In this document: in pieces, positions 7,701 to 19,700 of the stretch
Position numbering within the stretch: position 1 is the first letter of the stretch
Layout: every line of letters begins with the position of its first letter
DNA from: Orbicella franksi
Lineage: Eukaryota
Direction: 5' to 3'
Length of the DNA stretch: 64,000 nucleotides
Assembly (NCBI GenBank): GCA_964199315.1
Contig: OZ116699.1
Coordinates: forward strand, 38,936,001 to 39,000,000
Position numbers and translations under genes: made by a program
The notes under the pieces: generated by a model
Seen by the model: only the letters and a program-made list of their open reading frames with translations
Database searches by the model: none
Told to the model about the DNA's origin: nothing

Positions 7701-10700
7701 AAATTTTCTATTTAGTGCTAACTTGGCGCAACGTGTGTTTAGTGATATAGAAAGTTTTCACTCACGTGGCCGGCAGCCATGTAAAATTATTGGACTAAAA
7801 GAACGTGTTTACGTAAGAAACGAGTTCAACTCCCACTGGAGTTGATACACCAGCATGGCTGCCGTTTTGATGTTTTGGAACACCAATATGGTTGTCGTGA
7901 CGTCATGGGAAAACGCGCTATTCATAAAGAATGATGATCTCTCAGAGGGTTGCTTTCATTTTCCAATCGTTTCAATTTAATCTTTCCTACTTTACAGAGA
8001 GACGTACGGAAAACGTACATTGATTTGGCATACCAAATATGAAACATCGAACTTAAAATGAAATTATTGATGGAGGGCGAGGGTTAGAGGGGGGTCAGTG
8101 ACCAAAACAAAGATTTATGTTGTCCATTACGAGGATGTCAAGGATTGGTAGGGGGGAAGAAGAACAAGGCAACATTTTTTTAGAGAGATCATACATGGTT
8201 AACTGGTTTCATACCAAACTTTTCCCCTAATTTCTGGACTTACTCGCTTAACATAGTTTGTAGTTTGAGACTTGTCTTTCAGGGCCAGCTCTTCTCCTGA
8301 GCCTGAGGCATGCACTTCGCCGTCTGCCAAAGCGGTAAATAAATTCTTTAGCGCAGCACCAGTCTTTTTATCTTTATTTTTTTCCGTCGCCTCATCGCTG
8401 ACTGGAGCTTCTTCGGTATTCTGAGGTAAACTGTGTTCAATGTCAGACTTCCTTTCAATTTTATTATCCAGTGCTGCTTTTGCGAAGTCACCCATTGTGT
8501 CAGTGATTACTTTGCCTCTCTTACTGCTGTCCTGTCCTGCGCTTCCTTCTTCCTCGCCAACAGAGGTGTCTTCATTGTTGCTGCTATCTTCCTCAGCGGT
8601 ATCTTCATTGTCATCATCGTCATCTTCTGTGTCGTCGCTGTCCCTCGAGATATAGTTTCGCTTATAATTTATTGCTTCTCCCGATTCGCTCTCTCCTGAC
8701 TCGTCATTTTTGTCCGACTTGATAGAAGATTCAGGTGAATCTGCCGATCCCGATGAATCTCTTGATTCTATAATGTCAGTGAAACAAATGCACAAATTTT
8801 GTTCATAAAGCTCTATCTATAATTCTGTCATAGAAATACGTCTAAGAGAACGGACTAAAAGCATTACTTCTGTTACTCGATAGAAATCCACACCAGCACG
8901 AGCTGTTGATGTATTGATGGTACAAGGGAACAGAATTTATTTTCGAGTTAGGTTTAATTTTTCTTTTCTGGGAGTATATTATTTGTTTTCTCTATCTCGT
9001 AAAAGTTTGGAAAAACTCGAAAAGGTTGCAGAAACGCCCGCGCGGATTCCCACAGCATGTCCGCTTCTCCGAAATCCCCACTTGTTTCTCTATATTTCGA
9101 TTGAAACGCTAAAATCATTTTCAAGTTCTCAAATAGTAAAACAGAACAAGCGGGAGCAATTGACAAAATGGTTGTGCGAGCAAAGAGGATTTACATTGTG
9201 ATAATTAAATTAAAATTTAACCTTAATTGGAAACAATTTCTCAGAGTGTTACTATTGAGTTGTTAAGCACTCCTGAGGTGAATCAGTTCATTGAAGTTGT
9301 GGAAACACTTGCTTTTGGCTCATGCCACCACGACATTTCTCATTCCCCAAACTTGTAATTGTGTTTTCGTAATGACAAGGAAAATTTTGCTATTTCCTAA
9401 TTTTCATACTGAGTATCAGTAAAAGACTCATTTATTTTGTTTTTCTAATAAGTGCTCTCGTGTACACATTGAATGATAAGATGTGCACGTACCGTGTTGC
9501 TCCTGAGGTATATTACTGCGCTTGGCAATTTCCCCATCAGCTGACTCACCGGAAACCGCTGAATAACCGGACTCGCCACTCTCGCCACTCTCTCCACTCT
9601 CTCCACTCTCGCCACTCTCGCCACTCTCGCCACTCTCGCCACTCTCGCCACTCTCGCCACTCTCGCCACTCTCGCCACTCTCGCCACTCTCGCCACTCTC
9701 GCCACTCTCGCCACTCTCGCCACTCTCGCCACTCTCGCCACTCTCGCCACTCTCGCCACTCTCGCCACTCTCTCCGCTCTCTCCACTCTCGCCGCTCTCG
9801 CCAGTCTCTCCACTTTTAGCAGATTCTTCAGACTCTGACAAATCTGCAACGTAGACAAATAATCGGTTTAGGCACAAAATAGATGATAAATATTCATTCA
9901 TTCATTCATTCATTCATTCATTCATTCATTCATTCAGTCAGTCAGTCAGTCAGTTAGTCAGTCAGTCAGTCAGTCAGTCATTTAGGTATTTGGGTATTTA
10001 GAAGACACAATTGATCTACGGACTGTCTGTGGCCGTCTTCGCAGAGTGCGTCATAGTCGATAAATACAGTAGTGTTTATATCTCGAGAAAGTCGTATAGG
10101 AAAACAAAATATGACTTGGCATGCTTTCGCGGCAAACCAGTTATGACTAAACAAAACGGCGAAGGTTACTCCTGTTTTAGTCTTGAGCATGAATTATGCA
10201 CAAGCAGCATTTACTACGATTTTAATCCACTGACTTGAAGTCGTAAAATTTCCGATTATGGAATTGCAGAATATTATTTGTTGCATGAGAAAAACCAAAA
10301 CTTCAGAGGACCTCAAAGGTTTTTGAAAGATACTTGTAAAATGTGATCCTGGTAATATCACTGAATATTGCGCATGAGCATCTGTGTAACAGGATTAAGT
10401 GCGCATGAGTGAGAAAGATCATAGGCTCGACGCCATGTTGAAAGAGAGCAACAAGTTACATCATCTGTGTTGAATTTATTCTTAACATAAAGATTGTAAC
10501 AGCATCCTCCAAATTAAAGATAGCTACATACTCAGACTAAGACAAAGATATTTACAAACCATATTGCTCCTGGGGTATTTCGTTCCTCTTTGAAATCGCT
10601 TGATCTTCAGATTCACCAGATTCGCCGCTCTCCTCAGATTCCCCGCTTTCACCGGATTCGCCGCTCTCCCCAGACTCTCCACTTTCCCCAGATTCGCCGC

Positions 10701-16700: not shown

Positions 16701-19700
16701 ACTGATAGCTACGGAGTTTATTGTATCCTTACCCGGTATTTCCGAGCGACGAGTTTTGTCTCCATCCAGAATTGCGTCCACTATAGCAGAAATTATTGTT
16801 CTAACTGCAGAAAAAGGAAAATTTATTCAACATGTAATAATTGCTAGGTGGATACTTCACACTCATCTTTCAAATTAATATCAGGTGTAAATATAATTTT
16901 AATGTTCTCCGGATAGTGATGGCTCTCAATCATCATTACCTTCTTTGTCGGCTTCTAAGTCATCAGCTCTTTTTTCTCTTCTCCCTGTGGACGCAAGATA
17001 TGAGTCGATTATTATTAGATAAAAAGAGGCTTTGTCTTTGCTTATAATAATGAAAAACCTCGACGAAATTGTTCTGAAGAGTGGAAGTAATGCAATAAAA
17101 AGGGGGAGGTTGACATTTTGGAAGGTTAAGTTGAATCAAGTTGTTGGAATTGCAACAGCCTTAACGAATGGTTCCTTTTAGCACAACGAGCTAGGAAGCT
17201 TTGGTTTTGGTTTATTACTGGCTGCAGATATTTTTTCAATCTATGTCGTTATCGCCCTCATTTTCTACTTGATTCTCCTGACTGAGAAGTATGACTAATA
17301 TCTTCTTGTCAGTTTGTGATCAACCAGCAAGGACATGATCAAGTCTTGAAGGTTTTGGTCATAAAACTGTGCTCAGTTTATCGGCGATATTCCTTGAACC
17401 TTTTTAAACATTCACACTAATTTCCAATCCGCGACAAATGATGCAGCATTTAATTTGGCCTTCTCCAACACTAAGCACTCTCGTTAATTAATGGAGTTTC
17501 CTCAGATTTGTCATGTTTAAAGCACGTTTTTTACAAGTAATCAGGTGCTGAATGCGAACAGAATCTCAGCAACGTAATGTTTTTTTTCAGTTCAGTCGCT
17601 ATCGTGGATGCTTGATTTGTAGAATAAGTTTTGATTTAATACTCTGTCACATTTCTTATCAGTTTGTTCGTAAAATTTTTAAACTTATCAGACCTTGGAA
17701 CTTGTGTTGATGTAATTGTGTTATTTCAATGAACTATTCGTTCACTGATTTGCAATGCCTCGGGGTTACCATAGAGACACCAAGAAATAAAATACGTCTA
17801 TATCTAACTATTTTCGTGACTAAAAAGACATCGTTCACAAATGGGGAACCCCATTGATTCAGGGCAGAATAGTTTACGAAAATAATGTCAAATAACATTG
17901 TAATCCAGACACGATTAGCAAACTATAACGGGGAGAAAATTTATGATATGATGTGCTAGTTTATTTCGTTCTTACAAATTGCTGGCACGCATTATGATGG
18001 TTTTACGTCTCAGTATTGGTGTTTCTAAAGGGCGTGTTTCACTGCTAGGCAGGTGCTCAGTTCCAGCGGGCTTCTAGAGTAGTTTCCTTTACATTCAAAC
18101 ATGACTGTTCACGTACTGAGGCGCACATCCAATGGCGTACACTGTCATGCCTTTAAACATGCCTTAAAGACGATGAAGTAAGCTCTAAAAGGCGGAGGAT
18201 TTAATGTGCACTCTTGGTTAGTCTCCCAGTCCCAAGGCTGACATTACATGAGCTTTACGTCTTAAATGAAGGTGGTAAAGGAAGTTTCCTCCGGTTAGGT
18301 GCTAAAGCGGACCGATTTCCTTTAAAGCAATTTCTTTATCGGTCTGCTCATCGACATAGAAGTGTAGAATCATGTAAAGGACGATTCAATTTAAAAATAC
18401 GTTGTTTTTCTAATATAAACTAGTTGTCATAGTTAAAGTTGTCTTTTACTTTGGAGGTTAAGAAAAGCCATACATTCATGCATAGACATGATTTTGACTA
18501 TACGACCTACACTCTCCTACAAATCGATATACCCTCCTGTAGACCCTGATGTGTTTAAAACCAAATATCTACGGGAGAATACCATAAAAACGTTTCATTA
18601 AAAATGTTTTAAAAAGATCTGGCTTTTCTTCTTTGAAACTATTGTTGTGACGAACTTTAGAGTGAGTTGAACTTGTCTAAACTGGTGCTCTAACAGCATG
18701 TATTACAGGTAGCTGGGTCAATGAAATTCACACAGACACTTCGCGTAATCGAATTGTTTCCTTATATCGATTCCTCTCATTTTGAATTATTGTAACAAAA
18801 CTACAAGTCTTCCTTGATTTAATTTTGTTCCTTTGTTCCCCATTTTTTTCTTTTAATAGTTCGGAGACATACCAAATGTCATCAACACCTAGAGGAGAGT
18901 AACACCTTTCATAAGCTGTTCAATTTTGCTCCGATTCTTAATTACATAAGCCCGAAGCTAATTTAAACCCGTTAAAATAACTGAAATAATTTGTTAATCC
19001 TTCATTTGCCCAACAACGACATGAAATCGAGAGGTTTTCTGGGTGTGTTCCACCTGACATGTTCAGACACGCTGACCCATGGTACCAACGACCAAAGGTG
19101 GCAGTTTACACCGCCATTTCGTGTCATGAGTCGTATACCTTGACTGATTTGGAGAAAAAGTGCTATATAGTGAACTAATCCTTGACTAATGTTCACCCAC
19201 TCCGTTCGTAAATCAAAATTTGAAATCTGAACACATGCCTACGAAATATAATCTTCGTCAGCAATCGTTCAACACTGTTATTAGTGAACGCCTTTCCTAT
19301 GAAAATGTTTTCATTAAAGCGTCCTGGAATTAATTCACCTTCTATGATACCAATTGAATAACTGACTTATATTGTCCAACGTTTAATGTCTGTTTTCTTT
19401 CTGCACTACAAAGAGTACTTTAGCCAGGTACCATTTGTGTTGGAACAAGCCATAGGCTCTGGACATATTTAATTTGTGAGTTGGGAAAACTCAGCCTTAA
19501 CAAGGGCTGAGTTTGTCTGTCTCCTAAATATTACGCGACAGAACGAACGTAAATTAACGGCTAAAACACTCCAGATAACTAAAAGCTCTTCAAAGTTTTC
19601 GAGTCACGTTATCTCAGCTTCTATTTCTGTTCATGGCCAGCTACATATTTAATGAACTCAACAATCACAACTAATTGGATAAAGGAGTTCTTTATGCTTC

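Follow-up and report, generated by a model that had tools for sequence, protein, structure and literature searches.

We analysed a 64-kb window of the Orbicella franksi genome (64,000 nucleotides of contig OZ116699.1, positions 38,936,001 to 39,000,000). All coordinates below are those of the window. A single minus-strand gene, running from 19956 to 4719, encodes a highly acidic protein in which a short motif, [KR]R-x-x-I-[PS], recurs from module to module. In our gene model, the coding sequence is 4,350 nucleotides (1,449 codons) long and is spread over 18 exons. These have AG/GT borders, and one continuous open frame crosses the model with zero internal stops. The gene is real, expressed and coral-restricted. 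A preliminary description of this DNA had captured the middle part of the gene; its limits coincide to the base with the start of exon 2 (16984) and the end of exon K (8244). Missing from it were the signal-peptide exon, the context of the N-terminal peptide and a 355-residue C-terminal region. Orthologous loci, retrieved via the exon K product, represent four other coral lineages (L001, L002, L003-5 and L006) and share the exon-and-module layout.

The N-terminus is encoded by three exons. Exon 1 (19893..19956) supplies the start codon and a 17-residue signal peptide followed by SPIS. It ends in a phase 1 GTAAGT donor and is conserved with L003 and L002. Exon 2 (16940..16984; 45 nucleotides) encodes RRREKR|ADDLEADKE, which places a furin-type R-x-K-R site right behind the signal peptide. 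The acceptor, donor and coding block of exon 2 are conserved in L001, L002 and L003 (alignment A3). Exon A (16733..16804) contributes 25 residues of a near-invariant amphipathic peptide, 27 residues in length, together with the motif RRSEIP (16734-16751). Its product is 92-96% identical to those of L001, L002 and L003.

Exons B to J make up most of the acidic region. Here, each module consists of a Ser/Glu/Gly tract followed by [KR]R-x-x-I-[PS], and its exon lies between an AG acceptor and a phase 1 GT donor. In exon B (16293..16619) RRSFIP (16480-16497) precedes a Ser/Glu/Thr-rich tract; orthologous open frames were found. Exon C (15624..15872) has KRSDIP at its start (15847-15864) and KRNVIP near its end (15643-15660). 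Exon D (14499..14996) encodes an acidic Ser/Gly/Glu tract in 166 codons and KRSKIP (14512-14529). The tract of exon E (14003..14227) contains Asp-Tyr-Glu and leads to KRDEIP (14013-14030). Exon F (12991..13317) has an (ESGESGDFE)n tract, corresponding to a 27-nucleotide tandem repeat, and KRSEIP (13007-13024). Exon G (12094..12516) differs in its mixed Lys/Glu/Ser tract and carries KRDEIS (12119-12136). The tracts of exons H (11245..11523) and I (10560..10871) are (ESG)n, the latter length-polymorphic, with KRSKIP (11264-11281) and KRNEIP (10573-10590), respectively. Exon J (9493..9843), also length-polymorphic, has 26 perfect ESG units and KRSNIP (9506-9523). Across the region, tandem repeats of 9, 18, 27 and 36 nucleotides code for the ESG-type tracts. 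Exons 2 and A-J are all symmetric and form eleven consecutive phase 1-1 exons. The preliminary description recognised this symmetry but counted ten.

Exon K (8244..8767; phase 1 to 0) closes the acidic region. It holds the last acidic module, with KRNYIS at 8646-8663, after which a conserved non-acidic region begins. The exon K donor, CGA|GTAAGT at 8244, is conserved in five loci. The small exons L (7499..7553), M (6446..6513) and N (6251..6320) are conserved, and their AG/GT borders are in phase. Exon O (5623..5817) is the most conserved block of the gene. Exon P (4719..4984) encodes a helical C-terminus and the stop codon (4719-4721), whose position is identical in five loci. A 3' untranslated region of at least ~800 nucleotides follows (3920..4718).

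Splicing and expression of the gene

Exon structure, expression and splicing of the gene are evident in RNA. Raw polyA reads (X24) and RNA contigs (X1 and X5) were placed on 9773-15772. Seven introns between exons C and J are base-exact in RNA (9843|10560, 10871|11245, 11523|12094, 12516|12991, 13317|14003, 14227|14499 and 14996|15624). Read on the gene's own (minus) strand, all seven are GT..AG introns (CT..AC on the plus strand). Exons H-G-F-E-D are spanned by a single X5 contig. One X1 contig runs across F-E-D and extends 866 nucleotides further 5', upstream of exon D. That these exons are joined in transcripts, as first supposed, is thus borne out for exons C to J. For the joins 1-2-A-B-C and J-K, our inference draws on frame, on splice signals and conservation, and on how far the X1 contig extends. 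When exon B was used to look for spliced 5' open reading frames, only single-exon genomic frames came up.

The 3' part of the gene was confirmed directly by a contig from an RNA run of a close relative (L008; 1,576 nucleotides, 89-96% nucleotide identity), which encodes protein P0059. This contig exits exon K at 8244/8243 and reads through K-L-M-N-O-P at exactly the modelled boundaries. It remains collinear from 4984 to 3920. The O-P join was also seen in another coral (P0049). Coral transcriptome and metatranscriptome runs contained 35-48% of the sampled words of 8200-16900, which is the exon fraction of that stretch. In polyA runs, 0.38 of the words of 4000-8240 were present, giving ~0.4 for both halves of the gene.

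The preliminary description proposed that the peptide repertoire could be adjusted by exon skipping. The RNA does not support this: no skipping joint was among those listed at the 5% threshold in raw reads or contigs on 9773-15772. Six weaker joints fell below that threshold, so rare skipping may still occur. Variation of another kind was found. In exon I, reads go back by 45 or 81 nucleotides; in exon J, reads carry extra CTCGCCACT units. Hence, both exons have repeat-number alleles. Copy number of the ESG-coding repeats (9572-9814 and 10612-10794) varies between individuals. TARA scaffolds of one lineage (L003, L004 and L005) differ in the length of exons G and K.

Two intronic features stood out in the read placements. 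The I-H intron contains a short element (10973-11172) with an RNA word depth of 43,000 in X1 and 169,000 in X5, compared with tens to thousands on the exons. At either end of the element, many reads continue into dissimilar sequence. The element resembles an abundantly transcribed dispersed repeat, of the short interspersed or other transposable kind, and seems unrelated to the gene. Just upstream of exon J lies an intronic (ATTC)n microsatellite of ~23 units (9892-9982), where reads seem to be cut.

Protein composition and the KR-x-x-IP motif

The protein comprises, in order, the signal peptide, SPIS-RRREKR, the 27-residue amphipathic peptide, RR-SEIP, eleven acidic modules and the 355-residue non-acidic region. 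The only hydrophobic 19-mer lies in the signal peptide. The mature protein is 20% Glu, 19% Ser, 11% Gly and 9% Asp, contains zero Cys and has a net charge of about -280. The acidic tracts account for ~70% of the protein and keep their composition. There are 125 S-x-E sites, 127 Ser-Gly dipeptides (mostly within Glu-Ser-Gly-Glu) and several Tyr residues in an Asp/Glu context. Given the 125 S-x-E and 127 Ser-Gly sites in the tracts, heavy phosphorylation and/or glycosaminoglycan addition is likely.

Helix is predicted for the C-terminal region. Modelled alone with AlphaFold2, exon P gives five helices with a predicted local distance difference test score (pLDDT) of 75. The 232-residue C-terminus (A7) also gives helices but has a pLDDT of 44 and no confident fold. 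The 355-residue region matched no Pfam family, PDB sequence or ESM Atlas cluster. PDB sequence and profile searches returned noise only, and ESM Atlas scores (0.64) were not above those of shuffled sequences. When every exon and the spliced C-terminus of P0059 were compared with Pfam, nothing was recovered except Collagen on the ESG arrays; neither Granin (PF01271) nor Serglycin matched. A resemblance of exon O (5700-5770) to TAL-effector repeats (AvrBs3) was judged to be chance. Its summed E was 3.9e-6, no single stretch was significant and the match rests on GLTPE..AIA.

The Collagen matches raise the idea that the (Gly-Glu-Ser)n arrays assemble into triple helices of the collagen type, for which the helical C-terminal region would act as the nucleus. 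Scores for this family (PF01391) do exceed the gathering cut-off in exons J (65.8 bits), H (34.2 bits) and I (30.4 bits). However, they stem from Gly at every third residue of a simple ESG repeat, which makes them a periodicity artefact. In addition, the arrays are free of Pro, their charges are all negative and exons D, F and G interrupt the Gly register, as ESGESGDFE does. The proposed nucleating region is the one modelled with a pLDDT of 44. We regard collagen-like helices as extremely improbable.

A six-frame scan identified 12 minus-strand matches to [KR]R-x-x-I-[PS] between 8646 and 16751; the rest of the window has only 11 over all six frames. In 20,000 shuffles of the mature protein, the mean number of matches was 0.029 and the maximum was 2, compared with the 12 observed. 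The eleven copies listed in the preliminary description all lie where it placed them on the minus strand, and RRSEIP (16734-16751) is the twelfth. The protein holds 19 dibasic pairs. In the acidic region, x-x-I-[PS] stands behind every KR or RR pair, and of the protein's eleven Ile-Pro dipeptides all but one are inside the motif. The extended consensus is [DE]-x-x-[IVL]-[STV]-K-R-[SND]-x-I-P-[RKT]-[ED]; a shorter form is Phi-x-[KR]-R-[S/N/D]-x-I-[P/S]. Exons C to J end 7-12 residues past KR. Counted from the Lys, this is the spacing of 9-14 residues already reported for these eight exons. In L001, L002, L003 and L006, a phase 1 donor likewise follows 6-12 residues past KR.

Such regular placement could mean that the motif is held by forces acting on nucleotides. 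Briefly, these might be exonic splicing signals near the 3' ends of exons or gene conversion among duplicated exons, and the motif does sit 6-12 codons from the donor. However, the RRSFIP and KRSDIP copies are distant from any donor. Furthermore, the motif codons vary synonymously at all four conserved residues (AAA/AAG for Lys; AGA/AGG/CGC/CGA for Arg; ATA/ATT/ATC for Ile; CCA/CCG/CCC/CCT for Pro). Hence, the constraint acts on the protein, and these codon data largely refute nucleotide-level explanations. Gene conversion would also be expected to homogenise the modules, which instead correspond one-to-one between species with module-specific tails. We consider this explanation very unlikely.

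The one-to-one correspondence is most apparent in the window, L003 and L001. All three have twelve collinear modules, each with its own tail, such as NEIPQEQ or DEISRDD. Hence, the duplications predate the split of these lineages. A symmetric phase 1-1 exon was probably duplicated to give the modules at a time before the coral lineages sampled here separated. In 30 orthologous pairs, identity was 93% for the Lys, 100% for the Arg, 100% for the Ile and 80% for the Pro of the motif; flanking positions ranged from 17 to 70%. Exon A (92-96%) and exon O (64-100%) are far better conserved than the tracts (~30-55%). For exon O, identity falls from 100% in L006 through 94% in L003 and 88% in L001 to 64% in L002, the most distant lineage. 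The preliminary description saw one module per exon, with tracts diverging freely around a fixed motif, and staked its reading on conservation of the motif in orthologues. This picture holds, and the motif is kept in all four other lineages.

Introns cannot be aligned between the window lineage and L003. Against this background, ~730 nucleotides around and upstream of exon 1 (19583-20303) are 81% identical to L003. This block is a candidate conserved promoter or 5' untranslated region.

Beyond the orthologous loci, exon K was compared by HMMER with the full set of 1.84 billion representative proteins and gave 11 hits, all short open reading frame fragments. Those with traced contigs were all from coral metagenome or genome assemblies. 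Exon O recovered 24 clusters at 64% identity or above, with no name more informative than 'hypothetical protein'. Neither search detected a homologue outside coral assemblies. No published description of the gene was found in the literature on Fam20C, granins, chondroitin core proteins or DSPP in corals.

Predicted processing of the precursor

On balance, we think it rather more likely than not that the gene encodes a soluble secretory polyanion precursor, cut at the KR-x-x-IP junctions by convertases of the Kex2/prohormone convertase (PC) type. The cleavage is a prediction from sequence. The signal peptide would direct the protein into the secretory pathway. The furin-type site RRREKR and the first RR-SEIP site would then free the 27-residue amphipathic peptide. 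Convertase cleavage behind each KR would release about eleven polyanionic peptides of 45-168 residues and a helical C-terminal fragment of 355 residues. The fragments predicted between motif sites are, in order, 47, 71, 68, 168, 76, 107, 138, 95, 106, 117 and 45 residues long, close to the 75-170 residues initially suggested. Every product would begin x-x-Ile-Pro, and the Ile-Pro might serve as an N-terminal cap that blocks trimming by aminopeptidases or dipeptidyl-peptidases. The products could act as cation- or calcium-binding polyanions, either in the matrix of secretory granules or in a calcifying matrix.

Kex2/PC convertases favour paired basic residues, a small polar P1' and an aliphatic P4. 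The protein has these properties. It has a signal peptide and no membrane anchor, consistent with secretory entry. At the 12 [KR]R sites, Ser, Asn or Asp occupies P1', Ser, Thr or Val occupies P3 and P4 is mostly Ile, Val or Leu. The N-terminal RRREKR adds a further paired basic site. Dibasic processing also has a coral precedent in the matrix protein galaxin (PMC2726143).

Several observations weigh against this interpretation. First, we know of no convertase that requires Ile-Pro at P3'-P4'. Hence, the invariant Ile-Pro implies a requirement beyond simple KR cleavage, and the motif may alternatively hold a second, non-proteolytic role. Second, cleavage, phosphorylation and glycosaminoglycan addition are all predictions, and the cell type of expression and any link to mineral are conjectural. 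Third, the joins 1-2-A-B-C and J-K come from the gene model rather than from direct reads. Fourth, X24 covers every exon, whereas another polyA RNA sample with the same species label (X22) has zero depth on all of them. Hence, expression depends on sample, stage or tissue. Last, conserved strings of the protein are absent from the supplements of three papers on coral skeletal proteomes. This is a weak objection because the tracts yield no tryptic peptides.

The unexplained Ile-Pro is the main argument for an intact protein. In this alternative, the full-length molecule is a proteoglycan- or mucin-like polyanion. The uncut KR-x-x-IP motifs are cationic and hydrophobic 'stickers', regularly spaced by anionic spacers, or docking sites for a partner such as a xylosyltransferase, a Golgi kinase or a component of the matrix. 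The 127 Ser-Gly sites, with their acidic flanks, resemble arrays for glycosaminoglycan attachment, and the conserved helical C-terminal region might serve an intact molecule as an anchor or a means of multimerisation. Conversely, KR or RR in a secretory protein, where P4 is aliphatic and P1' small and polar, is the classic convertase site, and a furin-type site is present at the N-terminus. To our knowledge, there is no docking motif of the KR-x-x-IP form. We see a full-length polyanion as possible, though unlikely.

If the precursor is cleaved, the short conserved pieces might be the functional products. The 27-residue peptide, the x-x-IP heads and C-terminal fragments would then be hormone- or neuropeptide-like, with the acidic tracts as spacers, as in cnidarian neuropeptide precursors. 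In keeping with this, the exon A peptide is 92-96% conserved and flanked by RRREKR and RR, the tails behind KR (NEIPQEQ, for example) are conserved one-to-one across species and tract length varies between individuals. However, no motif copy has a Gly ahead of KR, and so there is no amidation signal. The tracts, moreover, hold their composition and form ~70% of the protein. The gene has a high word depth in adult colony polyA metatranscriptomes, which would be unusual for a neuropeptide gene, although depth is a poor measure of expression. A precursor of this type seems to us decidedly unlikely.

Returning to a cleaved polyanion precursor, a fuller proposal can be put forward tentatively. The gene may be a stony-coral 'polyanion polyprotein': one orphan gene with twelve Phi-x-K-R|x-x-I-P cuts. 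These would yield a fixed, ordered set of about eleven different acidic peptides bearing phosphate and/or glycosaminoglycan, along with the amphipathic peptide and the helical C-terminal fragment. In the Ile-Pro cap, the processing signal would have an element not described before. The products might control the handling of Ca2+/CaCO3, be it in secretory granules as they condense or in the vesicles and matrix of calcification. Such a system would be an independently evolved invertebrate version of granin and DSPP logic.

Relation to known acidic precursors and other features of the window

The gene is best described as belonging with acidic, dibasic-processed secretory precursors, its own processing being predicted. 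By analogy only, it would work like a granin and resembles DSPP or serglycin in composition; it belongs to none of these families. Granins (chromogranin A/B and secretogranin II) are likewise secreted and very acidic, with many dibasic sites and conserved ends around a fast-evolving acidic middle. They are multi-peptide precursors that bind Ca2+ in regulated secretory granules. Unlike granins, the coral protein has no Cys, hence no N-terminal disulfide loop, and it shares no sequence homology with them, in line with the absent Pfam match. A regular exon-per-module build, and Ile-Pro coupled to every KR, are features of the coral protein and not of granins.

The preliminary description drew a parallel with vertebrate SCPP/DSPP proteins. 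As an analogy of composition this stands. Like DSPP and other SIBLING/SCPP proteins, the coral protein has Ser- and acid-rich repeats dense in S-x-E (Fam20C-type) sites, polymorphic repeat lengths and duplicable symmetric exons. DSPP/SIBLING precursors are cut into acidic products, which in the coral protein is predicted. The parallel does not extend to homology. SCPP genes have phase 0 exons and descend from SPARCL1 in a vertebrate cluster, whereas the coral gene is phase 1-1 and cnidarian. The proteases that process DSPP are of the BMP1/astacin type and cleave on the N-terminal side of Asp, whereas the coral sites are dibasic. The coral protein also lacks RGD and ASARM motifs. A Stylophora gene named 'DSPP' is expressed in immune cells (PMC8913943); no link between it and our locus could be made.

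Serglycin, the core protein of a secretory-granule proteoglycan, shares long Ser-Gly arrays with acidic neighbours, plausible acceptor sites for glycosaminoglycan. It differs in its size (~150 residues), its single Ser-Gly block and its lack of dibasic modules, and it is not homologous. In yeast alpha-factor and cnidarian neuropeptide precursors, which have acidic spacers, tandem modules are similarly parted by Lys-Arg with an aliphatic P4 (in alpha-factor, Leu-Asp-Lys-Arg), and the N-terminal segment behind the junction undergoes trimming or is protected. In such Kex2/PC repeat polyproteins the products are short and identical. By contrast, no two of the coral modules, 45-168 residues long, are alike, and it is the junction that is conserved. 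Among secreted coral proteins, the natural comparison is with CARPs/SAARPs, other secreted acidic proteins and galaxin, a matrix protein for which a dibasic processing site has been described (PMC2726143). All of these are Asp-rich or Cys-rich and unrelated in sequence to the KR-IP protein.

Models of how coral skeletons form, and of how secretory granules are packed, give acidic secreted proteins a central place. Known coral acidic proteins are Asp-rich and were discovered by tryptic proteomics. The product described here would be nearly invisible to that method because its tracts, of 45-168 residues, are almost devoid of Lys and Arg outside the motif. The gene is kept in divergent coral lineages and resembles no protein family described so far. 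Cleavage at its KR-x-x-IP junctions would make it the source of a new processing motif and of a defined, testable set of polyanionic peptides. Left uncut, the junctions would still be a conserved but unexplained signal in a secreted polyanion. Either way, the gene is a concrete candidate for functional study by knock-out, localisation and mineralisation assays.

Elsewhere in the window, the only resemblance to this gene is in one acidic exon of a neighbouring WSC-domain gene. In the neighbour, which lies on the minus strand (46900-53800), acidic exons come after a Cys-rich exon of the WSC type (~53780-53292). The acidic exon at 49698-49126 carries ENYSKRNVIP, a YSKR-x-x-IP form like that of exon C; it is otherwise dissimilar to the main gene. 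The window also contains inverted copies of one dispersed element with a common long open frame. One copy (15934-16155, plus strand) sits within the B-C intron and the other is at 48345-48572 on the minus strand.

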